A DNA stretch of 64,000 nucleotides. It comes from Macrostomum hystrix. Its lineage: Eukaryota; Animalia; Platyhelminthes. This document shows, piece after piece, positions 1 to 9,683 of the stretch. Each line of letters starts with the position of its first letter. Within the stretch, counting starts at the first letter, position 1. The notes beneath the pieces are model-generated. The model was not told the origin of the DNA. It saw only the letters and a program-made list of their open reading frames with translations, and did no database searches. Location of the stretch: NCBI GenBank assembly GCA_950097015.1, contig CATNEN010000008.1:3038001-3102000 (forward strand). The letters are read 5' to 3'. The position numbers and the translations under genes were made by a program.

Positions 1-1645
1 GATTGGCACCAGAATCCCAAGATTATCATCAGAATCCCAAGATTGGCACCAGAATCCCAAGATTAGCACCAGAATCCCAAGATTATCATCAGAATCCCAA
101 GATTGGCATCAGAATCCCAAGATTAGCACCAGAATCCCAAGAATAGCTTCAGAATCCCAAGATTAGCACCAGAATCCCAAGATTAGCACCAGAATTCCAA
201 GATTAGCACCAGAATTCCAAGATTAGCATCAGAATCCCAAGATTAGCACCAGAATCCCAAGAATAGCTTCAGAATCCCAAGATTGGCACCAGAATCCCAA
301 GATTAGCACCAGAATCCCAAGATTATCATCAGAATCCCAAGATTGGCATCAGAATCCCAAGATTAGCACCAGAATCCCAAGATTAGCTTCAGAATCCCAA
401 GATTAGCACCAGAATCGCAAGAATAGCTTCAGAATCCCAAGATTAGCACCAGAATCCCAAGATTAGCACCAGAATTCCAAGATTAGCACCAGAATCCCAA
501 GAATAGCATCAGAATCCCAAGATTAGCACCAGAATCCCAAGAATAGCTTCAGAATCCCAAGATTGGCACCAGAATCCCAAGATTAGCACCAGAATCCCAA
601 GATTATCATCAGAATCCCAAGATTGGCATCAGAATCCCAAGATTAGCACCAGAATCCCAAGAATAGCTTCAGAATCCCAAGATTAGCACCAGAATTCCAA
701 GATTAGCACCAGAATTCCAAGATTAGCATCAGAATCCCAAGATTAGCACCAGAATCCCAAGAATAGCTTCAGAATCCCAAGATTAGCACCAGAATCCCAA
801 GATTAGCACCAGAATCCCAAGATTAGCACCAGAATTCCAAGATTAGCACCAGAATCCCAAGAATAGCTTCAGAATCCCAAGATTAGCACCAGAATCCCAA
901 GATTAGCACCAGAATCCCAAGATTAGCACCAGAATCCCAAGAATAGCTTCAGAATCCCAAGATTAGCACCAGAATCCCAAGATTAGCACCAGAATCCCAA
1001 GATTAGCATCAGAATCCCAAGATTAGCACCAGAATCCCAAGAATAGCTTCAGAATCCCAAGATTAGCACCAGAATCCCAAGATTAGCACCAGAATCCCAA
1101 GAATAGCTTCAGAATCCCAAGATTAGCACCAGAATCCCAAGAATAGCTTCAGAATCCCAAGATTAGCACCAGAATCCCAAGATTAGCACCAGAATCCCAA
1201 GATTAGCACCAGAATTCCAAGATTAGCACCAGAATCCCAAGAATAGCTTCAGAATCCCAAGATTAGCACCAGAATCCCAAGATTAGCACCAGAATCCCAA
1301 GAATAGCTTCAGAATCCCAAGATTAGCACCAGAATCCCAAGATTAGCACCAGAATCCCAAGATTAGCACCAGAATCCCAAGAATAGCTTCAGAATCCCAA
1401 GATTAGCACCAGAATCCCAAGATTAGCACCAGAATCCCAAGAATAGCACCAGAATCCCAAGATTAGCATCAGAATCCCAAGATTAGCACCAGAATCCCAA
1501 GATTAGCACCAGAATCCCAAGATTAGCACCAGAATCCCAAGAATAGCTTCAGAATCCCAAGATTAGCACCAGAATCCCAAGATTAGCACCAGAATCCCAA
1601 GAATAGCACCAGAATCCCAAGATTAGCATCAGAGTCCCAAGATTA
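1..1645. repeat. 20-bp minisatellite (GATTAGCACCAGAATCCCAA), about 82 copies, in the tropomyosin intron upstream of exon 4a; left end beyond the window
   Basis: Strict 20-bp periodicity with variant units (GAATAGCTTC, GATTGGCACC, GATTATCATC). Confidence 0.97.
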
Positions 1646-1716
1646 GCGCCGAATTTCCTGGTATCTTGGGATCGTCATCCACCATTGCTGACACTCGCCG
1701 GTCTCCGCTGTCCCAG

Positions 1717-1905
1717 AGGCCGCAAGGTGCTGGAGACCCGCTCCATCGCCGACGATGAGCGCATCAACTCGCTGGAAGAGCAGCTGAAGGAGGCCAAGTT
1801 CATCGCTGAGGATGCGGATCGCAAATACGACGAGGCCGCCAGGAAGCTGGCCATCACCGAGGTCGACCTGGAACGGGCCGAGTCCCGCCTGGAGGCTGCT
1901 GAGAG
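1717..1905 (+). CDS. Tpm: Tropomyosin path A, fused exon 4a+5a (189 nt = 118+71)
   Basis: tcccag| acceptor and |gtggcg donor, both phase 2. Encodes [62 protein letters not shown], typical tropomyosin. Confidence 0.95.
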
Positions 1906-2154
1906 GTGGCGCATCCCCCTGATCTTTTTTTCCATTCTGCCGAATGAGTTTTTTATCCCCGTTCGCACGCACTTGGAACTGACGTGGCCTTTTCAAGTAA
2001 AAGAAGTCAAAACAGCTTCTGCGTGGCCTGACTAATGCGCATTGCTTGCTTTTTGGTATTGTTTGAGTTTTACATGATCCATAACTGACATAGCTTTACT
2101 GGCATTGAACCCTTCCTAGCGATTCTATTGTATCCAAAGAACGTTTAGATCCCT

Positions 2155-2590
2155 TCACAGACGTTCACATCCCATCCCGATTGTTCAGATCCCATCCCGA
2201 CTGTTCAGATCCCATCCCGATTGTTCAGATCCCATCCCGACTGTTCAGATCCCATCCCGACTGTTCAGATCCCATCCTGACTGTTCAGATCACATCCCAA
2301 TTGTCCAGATCCCATCTTGAATATTTAAATCCCATCCCGAATGTCCAGATCCCATCCCGACTGTCCAGATCCCATCCCGACTGTTCAGATCCCATCCCGA
2401 CTGTTCAGATTCCATCCCGACTGTTCAGATCCCATCCCGACTGTCCAGATCCCATCCCGATTGTTCAGATCCCATCCCGACTGTCCAGATCCCATCCAGA
2501 CTGTTTAGATCACATCCCAATTGTCTAGATCCATCTTGAATATTTAAATCCCATCCCGACTGTCCAGATCCCATCCTGAATAAAAAAATC
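2155..2590. repeat. Intronic 20-bp minisatellite (CAGATCCCATCCCGACTGTT)
   Basis: Visible tandem periodicity; explains the repetitive ORF 2181-2528. Confidence 0.93.
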
Positions 2591-2879
2591 TCATCCCGCA
2601 TTTTCAGATCGTATCCTGTATAGACCCCATCTTTGGAATCCCATCTCCGTCAACAAACGGAATAAAAAATCCCATACTAAGACGCGAATGTATTTTTGCG
2701 TGTCCCCAGTAAACCGTTTTATACAATTGTTTTTGTTTTTTATTACTATTTGCATGTGTTTTTGCTGTTACAGTTTTGCGTTGCCAATTGAGGTAGAAAT
2801 TCTAGGCTAGGATTATTCGACACGCATAATAAACATGTCAGCCTCATTGCACTCGCACCCGAACGTCGGATGTCATCAG

Positions 2880-3026
2880 ATCAACCGGAAGCTGCTGCTG
2901 ACCGAGACCCAACTGGATCGGGCCGAGCAGAGGGCCGAAGCAGCCGAGCAAAAAGTCAAGGACCTGTCGGACGAGCTGCACTCGGTGGCTAACAGTCTGA
3001 AATCGTTGGAGCTCAGAGATGCCAAG
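2880..3026 (+). CDS. Tpm: Tropomyosin path B, fused exon 5b+6b (147 nt = 71+76)
   Basis: catcag| acceptor and AAG|gttctt donor, phase 0/0. INRKLLLTETQLDRAEQRAEAAEQKVKDLSDELHSVANSLKSLELRDAK aligns to tropomyosin residues ~165-213. Confidence 0.85.
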
Positions 3027-3343
3027 GTTCTTCTTCACCTGTGTTTATATATATATATTTATTTATTTATTAGTTTATTTATTTGTTTATTTATTTGTTT
3101 TTTGTTTTTTTTTCTTTGTTTATTTGTTTATTTATTGATTATTTGTTTATTAGTTTATTTTTACAAAACGCCAGGGGGTCCTAGATGCAGTACTGTGTAG
3201 GTTTTGCAAATTATGTGGGTTGGTACCTTGTTCGACAGCATGGCCTGTTTGCCTCCTCGTCTCTCTTGACTTGATTGATTTATTAAAAAACGATTCTAAA
3301 AAATCTTGCTTAGCAACAAACACGTGTAAAAATATCATGGCAG

Positions 3344-3482
3344 CAAAATCCTGGAGCTGGAGGAGGAGCTGCGAGTTGTTGGCAGCAACATGAAATCTTT
3401 GGAGATCTCCGAGCAGGAGGCCGCTCAGCGCGAGGAGTCCTACGAAGAGACCATCCGGGATCTCACCGAGCGCCTCAAGGCT
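3344..3482 (+). CDS. Tpm: Tropomyosin path A, fused exon 6a+7a (139 nt = 76+63)
   Basis: ggcag| acceptor (phase 2) and |gtaagg donor (phase 0). Encodes [46 protein letters not shown]. Not in the ORF track because it lacks a start codon. Confidence 0.95.
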
Positions 3483-3552
3483 GTAAGGGAATTAGCCCGA
3501 CTGCACATTGTTGGCGATTGCTTTTACAGTTAGCCATGTTTACAAGTTACCA

Positions 3553-4172
3553 ACACATCTATTAGATTACGGAGGATTAGCAGCACATCTAAGAGATCAC
3601 GGATGCTTAGCGGCATGCTTAGCGGCACATCTATTAGATCACAGAGGATTAGCGGCACATCTATTAGATCACGGATGCTTAGCGGCACATCTATTAGATC
3701 ACAGAGGATTAGCGGCACATCTATTCGATCACGGATGCTTAGCGGCACATCTATTAGATCACAGAGGATTAGCGGCACATCTATTCGATCACAGAGGATT
3801 AGCGGCACATCTATTAGATCACTGATGCTTAGCGGCACATCTATTAGATCACAGAGGATTAGCGGCACATCTATTAGATCACTGATGCTTAGCGGCACAT
3901 CTATTAGATCACAGAGGATTAGTGGCACATCTATTCGATCACGGATGCTTAGCGGCACATCTATTAGATCACAGAGGATTAGTGGCACATCTATTAGATC
4001 ACAGAGGATTAGCGGCACATCTATTAGATCACTGATGCTTAGCGGCACATCTATTAGATCACTGATGCTTAGCGGCACATCTATTCGATCACAGAGGATT
4101 AGCGGCACATCTATTAGATCACAGAGGATTAGTGGCACATCTATTAGATCACGGAGGATTAGCGGCACATCT
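3553..4172. repeat. Intronic 30-bp minisatellite (GATCACAGAGGATTAGCGGCACATCTATTA)
   Basis: Tandem periodicity; 10-aa repeat ORFs on both strands. Confidence 0.93.
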
Positions 4173-4494
4173 ACAGCTTAAAGGCCAACTCTCATGTATT
4201 TTTCGACAGTCCAAGATTATGCTCACAATTCGATATTTTCAAACCATGGTTCTGTCAAAGAGGTACATAAATTCATGCTAAAGCAAAGTTCGATGCTGAA
4301 CTCCAGTCGTGTCGTCATCGCCTACAGATCTTGTGCATTTATGACTGATCCACATGCTGTGCTGTGAATAACCGAATGCGGATGACTTAAATGGGCTTTC
4401 AAGAGCATGGCGTTTTTGCGTTTCAATTAACGAATTTTTATTTTCATTTTTTATTGCAACTCTTTGACGTGAAATTATCAGATTTTCCTCATAT

Positions 4495-5185
4495 TTCTTT
4501 CTTACCCTGTCCTATTCTCCGATTTCTTCCGTTTCCTCTCCCTCCCCTCTCCTATGTCCTCTTCCCCGTCCTATTCTCCTATTTCTCCCCTTCCCTCCCC
4601 TCCCCTATGTTCTCTTCCCTGTCCTATTCTCCTATTTCTCCCCTTCCCTCCCCTCCCCTATGTTCTCTTCCCTGTCCTATTCTCCTATTTCTCCCCTTCC
4701 CTCCCCTCCCCTATGTTCTCTTCCCTGTCCTATTCTCCTATTTCTCCCCTTCCCTCCCCTCCCCTATGTTCTCTTCCCTGTCCTATTCTCCTATTTCTCC
4801 CCTTCCCTCCCCCCCCTATGTTCTCTTCCCTGTCCTAATCTCCTATTTCTCCCCTTCCCTCCCCTCCCCTATGTTCTCTTCCCCGTCCTAATCTCCTATT
4901 TCTCTCCTTCCCTCCCCTCCCCTATGTTCTCTTCCCTGTCCTAATCTCCTATTTCTCTCCTTCCCTCCCCTCCCCTATGTTCTCTTCCCTGTCCTAATCT
5001 CCTATTTCTCTCCTTCCCTCCCCTCCCCTATGTTCTCTTCCCTGTCCTATTCTCCTATTTCTCTCCTTCCCTCCCCTCCCCTATGTTCTCTTCCCTGTCC
5101 TAATCTCCTATTTCTCTCCTTCCCTCCCCTCCCCTATGTTCTCTTCCCTGTCCTATTCTCCTAATTCTCCCCTTCCCTCCCGTCC
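4495..5185. repeat. Intronic 53-bp pyrimidine-rich minisatellite
   Basis: Unit CCTATGTTCTCTTCCCTGTCCTATTCTCCTATTTCTCCCCTTCCCTCCCCTCC; ORF starts 4554 and 4660 are 2x53 apart. Confidence 0.92.
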
Positions 5186-5267
5186 ACTGTGTTTTCTTCC
5201 CTGCATGAGCATAGCCCAATGCACCTTGCTTGTTTTAACCAGCCCTGCCTGTCGTACCGGTTTTCAG

Positions 5268-5330
5268 TCCGCCACTAGGGAGGAGTCGTACGAGACTCAG
5301 ATTAAGAACCTGACTCGCCGGCTTGCCGAG
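5268..5330 (+). CDS. Tpm: Tropomyosin path B exon 7b (63 nt)
   Basis: ttttcag| acceptor and GAG|gtaaat donor, phase 0/0. SATREESYETQIKNLTRRLAE matches residues ~214-234. Confidence 0.9.
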
Positions 5331-5519
5331 GTAAATAGCGTGCATTGTTTTGTTCTTCAAAATATTTAACTTTGGCAGCTGAGTGTGAGCGTGTGTGCTG
5401 AACTGTATGAGTGATACTTTTTACTTGGCTTGTTGGCATGCTCTGTTCTACGTCCAGTTTTTTTATGAAGGCATGACATTAATTAAAAAGCAGCATGCTT
5501 TCATAATTTTGACTAATCA

Positions 5520-6130
5520 GTAACCCCATCAGTCACTCTCAAGCCTAATCAGTCACTCTTAAAGCCCATCAGTCACTCTTAAAGCCCATCAGTCACTCTT
5601 AAAGCCCATCAGTCACTCTCAAAGCCCATCAGTCACTCTTAAAGCCCATCAGTCACTCTTAAAGCCCATCAGTCACTCTTAAAGCCCATCAGTCACTCTT
5701 AAAGCCCATCAGTCTCTCAAAGCCCATCAGTCACTCTCAAGCCTAATGAGTCACTCTCAAAGCCCATCAGTCACTCTCAAGCCTAATGAGTCACTCTCAA
5801 AGCCCATCAGTCACCCTCTAAGTCCTCCAATCACTCTCAAAGCCCATCAGTCACTCTCAATGCCCATCAGTCACTCTTAAAGCCTTCCAATCACTCTCAA
5901 AGCCCTCCAATCACTCTCAAAGCCCATCAGTCACTCTCAAAGCCCTCCAATCACTCTCAAAGCCCATCAGTCACTCTCAAAGCCCATCAGTCACTCTCAA
6001 AACCCGATCAGTCACTCTCAAAGCCCATCAGTCACTCTCAAAGCCCAATCAGTCACTCTCAATGCCCATCAGTCACTCTCAAAGCCCATCAGTCACTCTT
6101 AAAGCCCATCAGTCACTCTCAAAGCCCTCA
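5520..6130. repeat. Intronic 19-20-bp minisatellite (AAAGCCCATCAGTCACTCTY)
   Basis: Visible tandem periodicity. Confidence 0.93.
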
Positions 6131-6332
6131 AATCACTATCACTCACTCTCAATTAACAAACTAACATCATAACGAACTTATCCTAACCGGACGACACGAC
6201 TGAGAACACAGAGAAAATTATACTAGCCTGAGTCAAAGAAACCTGCAAACATGAACTCGCTGAGACCTGAGCAAGACCTGAGCAAGACCTGAGCAAGCCA
6301 ATATTAAAATAATGCTTTCTCACTTGTTAAAG

Positions 6333-6402
6333 GCTGAGCAGCGCGCCCAGGAGGCCGAACGGCAGGTGTCCAAACTGCAGAGCGAAGTGGACAGGCTGGA
6401 GG
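6333..6402 (+). CDS. Tpm: Tropomyosin exon 8a (70 nt)
   Basis: ttaaag| acceptor and G|gtatgc donor, phase 0/1. Encodes AEQRAQEAERQVSKLQSEVDRLE. Confidence 0.92.
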
Positions 6403-6590
6403 GTATGCTGACAGGAGATAACATCGAGACGAAACGAACCGATTCCCACTTCGAGAGCATTGCGTCGGCAGCTTAGAAGCGGGGCAGAGCAGAGCATGCC
6501 GCATGCCTGTGTGTGTGTGTGTCATTTCAGAGCTGCCCAAGCATTTCGCATGCCTCATTGCCCCCCGTGTGCCAACCCTTTCTATTCAAG

Positions 6591-6660
6591 GCTGAGGATC
6601 GGGCCGAGAAAGCCGAACGCGAGTCCATCAAGCATCAGAAGGAACTGGATAAGGTTGAGG
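6591..6660 (+). CDS. Tpm: Tropomyosin exon 8b (70 nt), alternative to 8a
   Basis: ttcaag| acceptor and G|gtgagc donor, phase 0/1. Encodes AEDRAEKAERESIKHQKELDKVE; same size and phase as 8a. Confidence 0.88.
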
Positions 6661-6974
6661 GTGAGCATGCGACCGTGTGCTGTGCCAGAGTCACTTCGCA
6701 TCAGGGACAGAGCCGGGGTTTGGGGACGCTTGAGTAGGGATTAAAGGATGTTCAACAGCCATGTCAAGATAATTGAGGGATAAATTATATAAGGTGGGAT
6801 AAAAATAAGGATAGTGTGATTCAGGTTCGGATAAAGAAAGACAGTAAATAAGAAGTAGAAAAGAGGGGAAGCGGGACACGGGTTTGTGATAAACAGAGAC
6901 AGGTAGTGTAAGTGGGGAGACAGGATGAGGTAGATGAGGAACGGGTTTAGATAAATTTGGGATAACTGAGGGAT

Positions 6975-7960
6975 AGTGAAACCGGTTGAGATAATTGAGG
7001 AACATGTTGGGATAAGTGAGGAACAGGTTGGGATAAGTGAGGAACAAGTTGGGATAAGTGAGGAACAGGTTGGGATAAGTGAGGAACAGGTTGGGATAAG
7101 TGAGGAACAGGTTGGGATAAGTGAGGAACAAGTTGGGATAAGTGAGGAACAGGTTGGGATAAGTGAGGAACATGTTGGGATAAGTGAGGAACAGGTTGGG
7201 ATAAGTGAGGAACAGGTTGGGATAAGTGAGGAACAAGTTGGGATAAGTGAGGAACAAGTTGGGATAAGTGAGGAACAGGTTGGGATAAGTGAGGAACAGG
7301 TTGGGATAAGTGAGGAACAGGTTGGGATAAGTGAGGAACAAGTTGGGATAAGTGAGGAACAGGTTGGGATAAGTGAGGAACATGTTGGGATAAGTGAGGA
7401 ACAGGTTGGGATAAGTGAGGAACAGGTTGGGATAAGTGAGGAACAGGTTGGGATAAGTGAGGAACAGGTTGGGATAAGTGAGGAACAGGTTGGGATAAGT
7501 GAGGAACAGGTTGGGATAAGTGAGCAACAGGTTGGTGATAATTGAAGATCAAGTTAGGGATAATTGAGGAACAAGTTGGGATAAGTGAGGAACAGGTTGG
7601 GATAAGTGAGGAACAGGTTGGGATAAGTGAGGAACAGGTTGGGATAAGTGAGGAACAGGTTGGGATAAGTGAGGAACAGGTTGGGATAAGTGAGGAACAA
7701 GTTGGGATAAGTGAGGAACAGGTTGGGATAAGTGAGGAACAGGTTGGGATAAGTGAGGAACAGGTTGGTGATAATTGAAGATCAAGTTAGGGATAATTGA
7801 GGAACAAGTTGGGATAAGTGAGGAACAGGTTGGGATAAGTGAGGAACAGGTTGGGATAAGTGAGGAACAGGTTGGGATAAGTGAGGAACAGGTTGGGATA
7901 AGTGAGGAACAGGTTGGGATAAGTGAGGAACAGGTTGGGATAAGTGAGGAACAGGTTGGG
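6975..7960. repeat. Intronic 21-bp minisatellite (GAGGAACAGGTTGGGATAAGT)
   Basis: Tandem periodicity; source of the GISEEQV and LFLTYPN pseudo-ORFs. Confidence 0.96.
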
Positions 7961-8039
7961 TACAACAGAGGAGCAGGGAGCATGCCCGGCAGGTCCGCAT
8001 GTTGCGCATGGTTCTGTGATGTGCGAATTCCTATTGCAG

Positions 8040-8122
8040 AGCGCCTGCTAGACGAGAAGCAGCGCCACGCGGCCCTCAAGCAGGAGATGGACGGCATGCT
8101 GGGCGAGTTTCAGAAGATCTAA
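8040..8122 (+). CDS. Tpm: Tropomyosin terminal exon 9b (83 nt including stop)
   Basis: attgcag| acceptor, phase 1. Encodes (E)RLLDEKQRHAALKQEMDGMLGEFQKI*. Confidence 0.88.
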
Positions 8123-9600
8123 AACCCGATTGCCGCGATCAGAGGAATAGAAACAGAATTTCTCCCGTTTCTGAGATCCCGTCTAGCGGGGGTTTCTTTT
8201 GAAAAGAACTGGCTAGAAATGCTGCAAAATAACAAAACGCTTTACCGCCTGAATCCATTTAGTATTTCTCCGCTTGCTCTGTGTTGATGCGTCTGCACCG
8301 ACTGACCTGCAATGCTTTAGTTTATTAATAACTTTTTTATTAACAAACGCTCGCTTCAGTTTTCTTGTTTGAACCGGCCTCTCCACTCTGGTGTTGTTTA
8401 CCCTGTTGGTCTGTTTGTCTGTTCATCTTTGGCTTCAAGTTAGTCTGTCTGCGGTAGCTGCTGCAAGTTTGGGGTTGTTTCACCAGTTCTTTTCAGAGGG
8501 ATCAATCAGGACTGAAATTCGGTTTCCCAAATCAATTTTTCTTAGCATTGCTTCTCATTCCTTTCGTTGGTCTACTAGAATTGCAGCTTTATTTTATATT
8601 TAAACAAAAATGTTAGCCTGGTATTTATGCTTAGTGTATACTTATGAAACTATTTATTAAAGCGATACAATCTATTTAAATATTCCGAATTTCCTATCTC
8701 CAGCTTTGCACATCTCCATACAATCATCTGCTTCACCCGATTCTCGCTCTATCCGATTTCTGAACCATATTGAAATTATAAGCTAGTCCTAAAATATTCC
8801 ACAATATGAGCTACAAATGCGCATCTGCCTACTATTAAGTAGCGCAGTAGGAATATTCCGCAGCTTGTGTGTTTTTTACTAAAATTTCCATTCCCTATAG
8901 CGTGATCGCATTGTTTTTGTTAAGTAAAAAGTAACAAGTTTACTAAAAACGGAAATGTCCTTGTTTTCGATTGTGGCACAGCAGTTAATTATGCACGAGC
9001 TGCTAACAGTTCTAGACAATTTTTCGCAACTTTCTCGCCTTATATTTCTTCTGTAAGTAGCAAGTAAGCAAATTATGCTAGTTTTTCTGCCTGTTTTTGT
9101 CATAGACTGGCTTGGAAAACAATTCTGGTTTGACGAAGCAATCGCCAGTTTACATGCCACTTAGCCCAGTAATTCAAAGCGATTTGCGTATTTATAATGC
9201 AACTCCTTCAAATTCGTTTATAATACACTTCTCATTTAGTTAATTCGAAAGCCATAGCCCCTATAACGGCTGCTAGAAGGATCATTTCGAGGGAAATAAT
9301 ATTGGCTTGAATCGTTTTGAAGTTCTCGCTAACCGCTGTGAAGTAGTTTTATATTGTCAGTTTTTTGTTCATTTTTCCACATTGGGAATCTGGTATGCCC
9401 TATTCGAGTTTCTGTGCTAAATAACTGCCACCTGGCTTGTTTTTCACTCATTGCATGGAGCGTGGAAATTGGTTAGTAACCTTTTTATGATAGTCGAAAT
9501 GGGTTCGTTTCGTCTCTTATTAAGTATTGGAAAACAATTGCCGATGCATACTACTGTCAGGGGCAGTCAACGTATACCATTTGCTATTTTATCTCCGCAG

Positions 9601-9683
9601 ACGAACTGCTGTCAGAGAAGGAGCGCTACAAGGGCATCAGCGAGGAGCTGGACCAGACCTTTGCCGAGCTCACCGGCTATTAA
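9601..9683 (+). CDS. Tpm: Tropomyosin terminal exon 9a (canonical invertebrate muscle-type C-terminus)
   Basis: ctccgcag| acceptor, phase 1. Encodes (D)[26 protein letters not shown]. Confidence 0.95.

Follow-up and report, generated by a model that had tools for sequence, protein, structure and literature searches.

The window analysed here, a stretch of 64,000 nucleotides of Macrostomum hystrix DNA, holds at positions 1-9683 the 3′ part of a tropomyosin gene whose alternative exons form two staggered series, A and B. We consider it rather likely that this is a working gene of a Macrostomum type, in which the series became staggered by loss of introns between neighbouring exons and the choice between A and B is controlled through GCAUG by an Rbfox-type protein. 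The enrichment of GCATG ahead of the B exons is a new observation.

Exon anatomy and reading frame

A sequence-only reading of this DNA had described eight exons of 189, 147, 139, 63, 70, 70, 83 and 83 nt in two series. This observation was confirmed: translation and inspection of the borders revealed a tropomyosin peptide in every exon, AG acceptors, and GT donors on the internal exons. All are on the + strand. Exon 4a5a of the A series (1717..1905, 189 nt = 118+71, codons 125-188) is bordered by ag and gtggcg, ends after the second base of codon 188 and contains the ancestral 4/5 boundary at 1834/1835 without an intron. Exon 6a7a, also of the A series (3344..3482, 139 nt = 76+63, codons 188-234), likewise runs through the ancestral 6/7 boundary at 3419/3420. 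Exon 5b6b belongs to the B series (2880..3026, 147 nt = 71+76, codons 165-213); it is in phase 0 at both ends and its acceptor has no pyrimidine tract. Intronless boundaries and phases are thus as they had been read before. A whole-genome profile scan with PF00261 gave 74.7 bits for 4a5a, 56 for 6a7a and 40.6 for 5b6b, all above the family cut-off. The B series continues with exon 7b (5268..5330, 63 nt, codons 214-234, phase 0, borders ag and gtaaat). Further downstream are the slowly evolving, A-like exon 8a (6333..6402) and, 188 nt past it, the fast evolving, B-like exon 8b (6591..6660), both of 70 nt. The two terminal exons are of 83 nt including the stop; 9b (8040..8122) encodes a C-terminus of the low-molecular-weight class type and 9a (9601..9683) a canonical invertebrate muscle-type C-terminus.

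An exon 4b ending in phase 0 had been predicted upstream of the window. It was found about 0.7 kb upstream (L005:9296-9413 = C8:3037296-3037413); it is 118 nt long, does end in phase 0, is bordered by ag and gtagtg, and matches PF00261 positions 82-128 with 37.9 bits. The whole gene extends from C8:3034278 to C8:3047683 in the order 1a, 2, 1b, 3, 4b, 4a5a, 5b6b, 6a7a, 7b, 8a, 8b, 9b, 9a, with upstream exons of 62 nt (1a), 178 nt (2), 141 nt (1b, with an internal start) and 134 nt (3). Each path A intron that survives between exons 2 and 8 houses an exon required by path B. Most of the 4b-4a5a intron is occupied by a minisatellite with 82 copies of a 20-nt unit (window 1..1647). It is one of six such arrays in consecutive introns, the other five being at 2141-2622, 3619-4173, 4500-5203, 5525-6127 and 6980-7960.

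The frame was followed exon by exon through all 32 include/skip combinations. The native 328 nt were obtained in frame only from A (4a5a+6a7a) and from B (4b+5b6b+7b); wrong combinations lose the frame and run into stop codons. Since their boundaries differ in codon and phase, the series cannot form a full-length in-frame A/B hybrid, and full-length protein is predicted to be either all-A or all-B over the two staggered series. The earlier claim that A and B cannot be mixed in frame therefore holds for full-length hybrids. It fails for A+7b (+21 residues) and for several deletion products, which are among six further products, shorter or longer than native, that remain open. Since A+7b stays open, 7b is not policed by frame alone. 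Within each of the pairs 8a/8b and 9a/9b size and phase are the same, and the frame permits any combination of them.

Such frame-dependent mutual exclusion, backed by nonsense-mediated decay, is known elsewhere: mismatched exons put translation out of frame and bring in stops, and many C. elegans mutually exclusive clusters have exons whose lengths are not divisible by three (PMC4165533). Here, however, incompatibility comes from the different boundaries of the series and not from length alone, and exclusion is incomplete at the 63-nt exon 7b. The gene also resembles C. elegans lev-11 (tmy-1), a single gene with tissue-specific promoters and several mutually exclusive exon clusters, among them exons 5a/5b/5c of 118 nt, as long as exon 4, and exons 7a/7b of 139 nt, as long as fused 6+7 (PMC4165533). 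In a lev-11 cluster the alternatives have the same boundaries and substitute singly for one another, whereas here the codons at which the series are cut differ (189/139 vs 118/147/63 nt) and exchange involves an entire series, made up of two or three exons that do not adjoin.

Predicted products, paralogs and identity of the B series

A message 1a-2-3-4a5a-6a7a-8-9 would have 284 codons and specify a canonical muscle-type protein. A message 1b-3-4b-5b6b-7b-8-9 would have 251 codons, and its product would be the counterpart of the spiralian low-molecular-weight cytoskeletal tropomyosins, a class of 251-254 residues. Judging from the DNA, both paths would be spliced and path B expressed; the collections searched contained no transcript or protein of this species. 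In a tree built from the 49 residues of the exon 5+6 region, the four 5b6b copies of this genome formed a clade with the low-molecular-weight class, annelid members included (support 97/91), and the spiralian A class formed another (100/100). Exons 4b, 5b6b and 9b had the same 242-254-residue proteins as their best database matches; among 369 database proteins fetched, the 9b peptide matched best P0275, a low-molecular-weight tropomyosin of about 242 residues. The 9a peptide is 77-85% identical to the C-termini of Schistosoma, Echinococcus and molluscs.

Paralogous genes on contigs C1 and C38 of the same genome have the same ten-exon layout with the same lengths. A third paralog, on C25, has only B-type exons plus a decayed 6a7a relic spanning the 6/7 boundary. 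The 147-nt exon 5b6b is present in C1, C38 and C25, and 63-nt counterparts of 7b are found in C38 and C1. In three paralogs, at a synonymous divergence of about 0.5-2, none of the five B exons has changed its length or lost its open frame or AG/GT borders, and no copy has a stop or frameshift. The divergent isoform B of the sequence-only reading is thus real: it is conserved in three paralogs and falls with a spiralian class of about 250 residues.

For A exons dN/dS is 0.03-0.17. Amino-acid identity of 4a5a is 94% to C1 and 81% to C38 (dN/dS 0.06-0.15), that of 6a7a to its paralogs 93-96% (0.03-0.06), that of 8a 100% to C38 and 87% to C1, and that of 9a 96% to C1. Between C8 and C38 the B exons are 53-73% identical with dN/dS of 0.07-0.23; 9b is at 73% and 0.07, and 8b is 57% identical to its paralogs. 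B exons of C1 are strongly diverged (19-44% identity to the other copies), and constraint on them may be relaxed.

Evolutionary rates and orthology suggest how 1a/1b, 8a/8b and 9a/9b would pair with the A or B series. It is doubtful, but far from negligible, that A and B are both used and yet uncoupled from these pairs, so that many isoforms are made instead of a single muscle protein and a single cytoskeletal one. The freedom of 8a/8b and 9a/9b to combine would allow this, and in C. elegans and vertebrates tropomyosin genes join promoters and exon clusters in diverse combinations (PMC4165533, PMC5840707). Against it, evolutionary rates are B-like for 8b and 9b and A-like for 8a and 9a, the C-terminus encoded by 9b is similar to that of the low-molecular-weight class, the 251 codons of 1b plus the B series fit the length of that class, and GCATG clusters precede 8b and 9b as they do 4b, 5b6b and 7b.

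GCATG ahead of the B exons

Of the 1024 5-mers, GCATG, an Rbfox-type core, ranked first in the 200-nt stretches preceding the B exons of three paralogs. There were 27 sites in 2960 nt before B exons vs 3 in 2200 nt before A exons (p 9e-12), with a background of 2.2 per kb over all introns. GCATG still ranked first with only the two paralogs in which the enrichment had not first been noticed. The words ranked next overlap GCATG and no other 5-mer comes close. On the + strand of the window a site lies 128 nt upstream of 5b6b (2752..2756) and another 65 nt upstream of 7b (5203..5207). Three sites (6494..6552) lie in the 8a-8b intron, 97, 90 and 43 nt before 8b, where shuffles gave an expectation of 0.19 (P 0.001), and three more (7980..8010) are 60, 43 and 34 nt upstream of 9b, against 0.18 expected; three were reached in 0 of 2000 shuffles. 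Overall, clusters lie upstream of 4b, 5b6b, 7b, 8b and 9b, and mostly these are also positions downstream of 4a5a, 6a7a and 8a.

The enrichment points to a common repressor of the whole series, and suggests that a single factor may switch the entire B set. Probably the A/B choice is made by a GCAUG-reading factor, an Rbfox-type protein. By the Rbfox position rule (PMC5840707) all B exons would be repressed together and A exons favoured, so that cells with the factor (muscle, by analogy) would make A and other cells B. Similar control is known for mutually exclusive exons of C. elegans egl-15 (5B/5A) and vertebrate alpha-actinin and MEF2D, where GCAUG lies upstream of the silenced and downstream of the used exon and the outcome is muscle-specific (PMC4165533, PMC5840707); in egl-15, RBFOX and SUP-12 repress the upstream exon in a muscle-specific manner (PMC4165533). 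Those are single pairs, whereas here five motif-bearing exons extend over about 9 kb (10 kb including the 4b sites). If the prediction is true, the GCAUG array is a series-wide switch.

The enrichment could also be real without being an Rbfox switch, reflecting another protein, an action at the DNA level or enhancement of B exons; we regard this as unlikely. Crude searches of this genome brought no Rbfox gene to light, although a planarian rbfox gene shows that flatworms have one (PMC4978528). The leading U of UGCAUG is present in only 3 of 21 C8 sites and many sites are the palindrome GCATGC; GCAUG itself is nevertheless the established core of Rbfox binding (PMC5840707, PMC11874969), and no rival word approaches it. 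A cluster downstream of 7b in C8 is not predicted by a simple position rule, and the B-only paralog C25 retains sites ahead of its exons; on the other hand, motifs upstream of one series and downstream of the other are the classical Rbfox arrangement (PMC5840707, PMC4165533).

Origin of the staggered layout

The intron positions 4/5, 5/6 and 6/7 are also found in vertebrates. We compared a handful of outgroup loci: Schistosoma (L015), Echinococcus (L016), Helobdella (L019) and Paralvinella (L014). Comparison with other flatworms had been proposed in the sequence-only reading, and the Schistosoma and Echinococcus genes do keep introns 4/5 and 6/7, as well as 5/6. These genes of the same phylum (tpm-1/tpm-2), which encode muscle-specific long isoforms (PMC4015340), have A exons 76-96% identical to those described here and two copies of exon 4, with 4b ahead of 4a; exon 5 is also duplicated in Schistosoma, and 6b and 7b were not detected in either locus. 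The Helobdella B-type gene retains the 5/6 intron. It and C25, as separate B-only genes, are cases of external paralogy in the 'internal and external paralogy' picture of tropomyosins (Irimia et al. 2010, as summarised in PMC3342872). The annelid Paralvinella has tandem duplicates of exons 4, 5, 6, 8 and 9, the same and in the same order as here, with two promoters and muscle-type and cytoskeletal-type products, but they are unfused (4b..4a, then 5a,5b, then 6b,6a, then 7), form conventional clusters and keep all canonical introns. The order 6b,6a was seen in this one outgroup, and exon 7 is single in every outgroup examined.

Since the outgroups keep introns 4/5, 5/6 and 6/7, the layout would have arisen by intron loss between neighbours of the same series; given the annelid order, the pairs fused later were already neighbours. 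The proposal of exon-wise duplication followed by intron loss is thereby supported. Outgroups point to an ancestor with tandem mutually exclusive pairs in the order (4b,4a)(5a,5b)(6b,6a)(7a,7b), from which the 4a/5a, 5b/6b and 6a/7a introns, lying between neighbours that were always spliced together, would have been lost, probably by recombination with spliced cDNA. In genomic contigs of close relatives (L017, L018) loss is more extensive, with codons 21-234 in one exon; both share with this gene an unusual intron at codon 20/21.

It is very improbable that no introns were lost, an already fused ancestor having duplicated differently bounded segments or other animals having gained introns later. 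The 139-nt exons of lev-11 have the size of 6+7 (PMC4165533, Table 1), so fused 6-7 exons exist elsewhere, and the outgroup loci are few. However, the three positions are common to vertebrates, annelid, leech, fluke and tapeworm, 5b6b is orthologous to separate annelid exons 5b and 6b, the annelid order is exactly that required for fusion of neighbours, and close relatives have lost still more introns. Very improbable too is that 4b, 5b6b and 7b, perhaps together with 8b and 9b, are unexpressed remnants of old duplications in a gene yielding the canonical A protein only: B exons do evolve much faster than A exons, the 5b6b acceptor lacks a pyrimidine tract and the C1 copies are highly diverged, but the B exons are not relics because they are under purifying selection, with lengths, frames and splice sites kept in three paralogs, and group with a widespread, expressed spiralian class, while a fourth copy (C25) uses B-type exons only and a specific motif is maintained ahead of them.

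Exon anatomy and reading frame

A tropomyosin gene lies with its 3′ two-thirds inside the window, which is part of a 220-Mb, 42-contig assembly. Family membership was judged with the PF00261 profile (curated cut-off 38.6 bits) in a scan of the whole genome. Taken singly, exons 4a5a (74.7 bits), 6a7a (56 bits), 3 (46.6 bits) and 5b6b (40.6 bits) all scored above this cut-off, and exon 4b alone, with 37.9 bits, fell slightly below it. Two extra matches just upstream of the window in the same scan led to the 5′ part of the gene in L005, the adjoining stretch of the same contig (C8:3028001-3038000).

The eight exons claimed in the sequence-only reading are 4a5a (window 1717-1905, 189 nt), 5b6b (2880-3026, 147 nt), 6a7a (3344-3482, 139 nt), 7b (5268-5330, 63 nt), 8a (6333-6402, 70 nt), 8b (6591-6660, 70 nt), 9b (8040-8122, 83 nt) and 9a (9601-9683, 83 nt). 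All of them translate as tropomyosin and have AG/GT borders, and the claimed sizes are indeed exact sums of canonical exons of 118/71/76/63 nt, with the ancestral 4/5 and 6/7 boundaries falling at 1834/1835 and 3419/3420. It had also been predicted that a path using 5b6b would need its own exon 4b upstream of the window. Reading of L005 located this exon at L005:9296-9413 with exactly the predicted properties: it is 118 nt long, ends in phase 0 and is bordered by ag on the 5′ side and gtagtg on the 3′ side.

The remaining 5′ exons are 1a (L005:6278-6339, 62 nt, the coding part from ATG), 2 (L005:6767-6944, 178 nt), 1b (L005:7258-7398, 141 nt, with its own ATG, 47 codons and a donor in phase 0) and 3 (L005:8864-8997, 134 nt). 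Summation of exon lengths gives a long message of 62+178+134+328+70+83 = 855 nt (284 codons and a stop) and a short message from 1b of 141+134+328+70+83 = 756 nt (251 codons and a stop). By this arithmetic the gene matches the canonical tropomyosin lengths (284 residues for the long form, ~250 for the short) and exon sizes (134/118/71/76/63/70 nt). The first coding intron (L005:6340-6766) follows codon 20 in phase 2, the canonical position being codon 38/39; in the Schistosoma (L015) and Echinococcus (L016) loci an exon appears to begin at about codon 39-40, as judged by tblastn match starts alone.

Exons 8a/8b (70/70 nt) and 9b/9a (83/83 nt) are homologous, adjacent and equal in length and phase, as classical mutually exclusive exons are. 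The exons covering codons 125-234 do not form such pairs: the A series, of canonical muscle type, is cut into 189 and 139 nt and the B series into 118, 147 and 63 nt, and the phases differ. The exchange unit over these codons is the whole series and not an exon pair. The frame was walked through the 32 include/skip combinations of 4b, 4a5a, 5b6b, 6a7a and 7b between exons 3 and 8. Only 4a5a+6a7a and 4b+5b6b+7b kept the frame open at the native length of 328 nt, and every swap toward a full-length A/B hybrid ran into a stop codon. Six further combinations stayed open. Five of them lack part of the 328-nt segment (6a7a, 6a7a+7b, 4b, 4b+7b and 4b+5b6b), and the sixth is the complete A series plus 7b, with 21 residues inserted. 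The claim that the two paths cannot be mixed in frame therefore stands for full-length hybrids but not for 7b, which can be added to A. The frame lock does not police 7b, whose skipping must be a matter of regulation. The idea that 4a could be joined to 5b6b from a cryptic donor within 4a5a, at its former 4/5 boundary, was considered and rejected, because the sequence there is GAG/GCC with no GT and a proper exon 4b exists.

Tandem exon duplication and the use of two promoters are established for tropomyosin genes, as is the trade-off of alternative exons against separate genes (PMC3342872, citing Irimia et al. 2010; PMC9741552). In C. elegans, lev-11 also contains exons of 139 nt, equal in length to 6+7; these form a conventional pair with equal boundaries, unlike the staggered series described here (PMC4165533). 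No account of tropomyosin gene structure in Macrostomum was found in the literature. Within the available text of the papers, including Irimia et al. 2010 as relayed by others, no description was found of two series that divide one coding stretch at differing intron positions, or of a single motif that marks all the exons of a series.

Origin and age of the staggered layout

Outgroup exons were mapped in loci reached through database proteins. In Schistosoma margrebowiei (L015) and Echinococcus granulosus (L016), exons 4b, 4a, 5a, 6a and 7 are separate and the 4/5, 5/6 and 6/7 boundaries all carry introns; a second exon 5 is present in the former. Comparison with other flatworms, as the sequence-only reading had proposed, thus finds these three introns retained in both species. 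In Helobdella a gene for a 253-residue tropomyosin (L019) consists of separate exons, all of B type. In the annelid Paralvinella palmiformis (L014) there are four exon-4 copies, a B-like copy lying ahead of an A-like one, followed by 5a, 5b, 6b, 6a, 7, two exons 8, a 9b-like exon and 9a, none of them fused. This order (b..a, then a,b, then b,a) is the one seen in the window, and it makes neighbours of 4a/5a, 5b/6b and 6a/7. Removal of just the introns within these three pairs from the annelid order gives the flatworm layout, which bears out the suggestion of exon-wise duplication followed by intron loss between same-path neighbours. The Octopus locus covers exons 8-9 only, and this view of the ancestral exon order is drawn from the annelid and flatworm loci.

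The path-A introns that survive between exons 2 and 8 each enclose an exon that path B uses (1b, 4b, 5b6b or 7b). This fits a mechanism in which introns would have been lost via cDNA, with selection for the second isoform acting as a check. The nearest relatives found for the A exons (80-89% identity) lie on two genomic contigs, L017 and L018, where codons 21-234 lie in a single exon without B exons inside. Both have the same unusual codon 20/21 intron as the gene studied. Their lineage is evidently one in which an A-only copy lost every intron across codons 21-234. L017:1-1703 comes from the Logan assembly of run SRR33002330 and L018:1-839 from ENA assembly ERZ27256860, at ~37-38% G+C; in the former, exons 8 and 9a follow, set off by short introns, and the latter stops within exon 8.

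Three more tropomyosin loci were found in the M. hystrix genome, on contigs C1, C38 and C25. The first two carry exons 3, 4b, 4a5a, 5b6b, 6a7a, 7b, 8a, 8b, 9b and 9a with order and lengths kept and splice sites intact; exon 9a of C38, which lies outside the stretch fetched, is the one gap in this ten-exon comparison. Synonymous divergence between the paralogs is ~0.5-2, so the duplications are old. The A-series exons are 79-100% identical among paralogs, with dN/dS of 0.03-0.17. The B-series exons are 19-73% identical; between C38 and C8, the contig of the gene studied, their dN/dS is 0.07-0.23, and for the most diverged B-exon pairs the ratio is not computable owing to saturation of synonymous sites. 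It could be supposed that the B exons are decaying, as their low identity might suggest. Yet in three copies, and across this synonymous divergence, all five keep open frames and exact lengths, which is unlike decaying sequence and supports the claim of a maintained B path. The B exons of C1 (G000:C1:25262001-25282000, minus strand) are far more diverged than those of C8 and C38, with identities of 19-29% for 7b and 23-27% for 9b and a dN/dS of ~1.2 for 9b, while frames and splice sites are kept; this may reflect relaxed constraint or a new function.

Only B-type exons are present at the C25 locus: a 118-nt exon 4, a 147-nt fusion of 5 and 6, and exon 7. The locus also contains a decayed copy of 6a7a (L013:79-220, that is G000:C25:3480079-3480220) which aligns across the 6/7 boundary and is, to all appearance, a trace of a lost A path. 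Together with the shared fused layout of C1 and C38, this relic makes the fusions older than all these duplications, and C25 is apparently the one copy that turned B-only afterwards. Within the relic the 6a part is open, and the alignment is lost a few bases beyond the 6/7 boundary.

Affinities of the B series

A maximum-likelihood tree was built from the 49-residue exon 5+6 region, with inner branches that are weak at 49 columns. The four 5b6b exons of the genome fell together with annelid 5b+6b and the class of 242-254 residues (support 97/91, starred), and the spiralian muscle-type class stood apart (100/100, starred). Among 369 fetched proteins, 4b, 5b6b and 9b were matched best by the same low-molecular-weight proteins, P0270-P0275, P0045 and P0001. 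By these comparisons, exons 4, 5-6 and 9 of the B series group with the spiralian low-molecular-weight class and not with the muscle-type class. Exon 1b, with its ATG and donor site, is present, and a short message starting there and carrying B exons would encode a cytoskeletal-type product. What is said here of splicing and tissue, and of how the series are linked to promoters or 3′ ends, is deduced from sequence conservation and orthology. With exons searched singly, 5b6b had no match above 60% identity among all cluster representatives, and word-indexed searches with P0105 and with alignments of database protein and 5b6b returned no near-identical protein; in the collections searched, no transcript, protein or further contig of the species came up with these exons. 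In the public annotation of the Paralvinella locus (JAODUP010000104.1:306943-335243) one tropomyosin locus is split into two gene models and alternative exons are strung together, 5b+6b and 6a+7 standing in one 201-residue product, P0001.

GCATG as a candidate switch

The pentamer GCATG was first noticed near 8b and 9b and was then counted in all three ten-exon paralogs (C8, C1 and C38). The 200 nt upstream of B exons contain 27 sites in 2960 nt (9.1 per kb), with at least one site in 12 of 15 such windows, compared with 3 sites in 2200 nt (1.4 per kb) upstream of A exons and 55 sites in 25359 nt (2.2 per kb) in all introns. Ranked by enrichment upstream of B exons, GCATG is first of 1024 5-mers (binomial p = 9e-12), and the words ranked after it overlap it. 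It remains first when the count is confined to C1 and C38, which were not the source of the initial sighting (p = 2e-6). Position-specific enrichment of (U)GCAUG in flanking introns, as expected of Rbfox-regulated exons, was thus found and was replicated in paralogs; the leading U is present at few of the sites. The 200 nt downstream of A exons are also rich in GCATG (14 sites in 1760 nt, 8.0 per kb), because in this layout the exon just before a B exon is usually an A exon. In C8 a cluster also lies downstream of 7b, and the B-only C25 retains sites ahead of its exons. A similar tendency, with small numbers, is seen in the annelid locus: GCATG stands before exon-4 copy 4-i, the B-like copy 4-ii, 6b and the exon resembling 9b, and it stands after the A-like 4-iii, 4-iv, 5a and 6a.

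Proteins of the Rbfox family recognize a GCAUG core, upstream binding leading to exon skipping and downstream binding to inclusion (PMC5840707). Muscle of C. elegans gives an example: of the egl-15 exon pair, the upstream member is silenced there in this manner by RBFOX together with SUP-12 (PMC4165533), and an rbfox gene exists in planarians (PMC4978528). The simplest reading of the GCATG pattern is silencing of the B exons by a single factor. Such a factor would silence 4b, 5b6b, 7b, 8b and 9b jointly, favouring 4a5a, 6a7a and 8a, and muscle-type message would be made where it is expressed. Crude searches of the genome with the Fox-1_C profile (PF12414) and with two degenerate RRM-motif DNA patterns gave no match. 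None of 67 RRM loci in the genome looked Rbfox-like in an equally crude search, in which an RRM split by introns could be missed.

Tropomyosin is a classic gene for the study of splicing coordination, and how distant alternative choices on one pre-mRNA are coordinated is still poorly understood. The most far-reaching interpretation is that intron loss turned four mutually exclusive clusters into two staggered, frame-locked series and that a single GCAUG-binding factor flips 4b, 5b6b, 7b, 8b and 9b; taken as a whole it is tentative, and we would give it somewhat less than an even chance. If true, it would offer a natural and genetically tractable case of such coordination. The structural answer would be that intron loss welds together exons that travel together, staggered boundaries making full-length hybrids unreadable, and the regulatory answer that one short motif stands ahead of B-series exons in three old paralogs. 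The usual methods for detecting mutually exclusive exons seek pairs of equal length and phase and would miss a staggered arrangement, which may therefore be under-reported. RNAi and in situ hybridisation are routine in Macrostomum, a laboratory flatworm, so both ideas are directly testable.

Six different minisatellite arrays, with units of 20-53 nt in 7-82 copies, occupy consecutive introns of the gene (window 1-1647, 2141-2622, 3619-4173, 4500-5203, 5525-6127 and 6980-7960). On the sense strand the array at 4500-5203, with a 53-nt unit, consists almost entirely of pyrimidines. Its end lies 65 nt upstream of exon 7b, and a repressor that binds pyrimidine tracts could use the array as a platform. 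Arrays of the 2141-2622 family recur at many other places in the genome.
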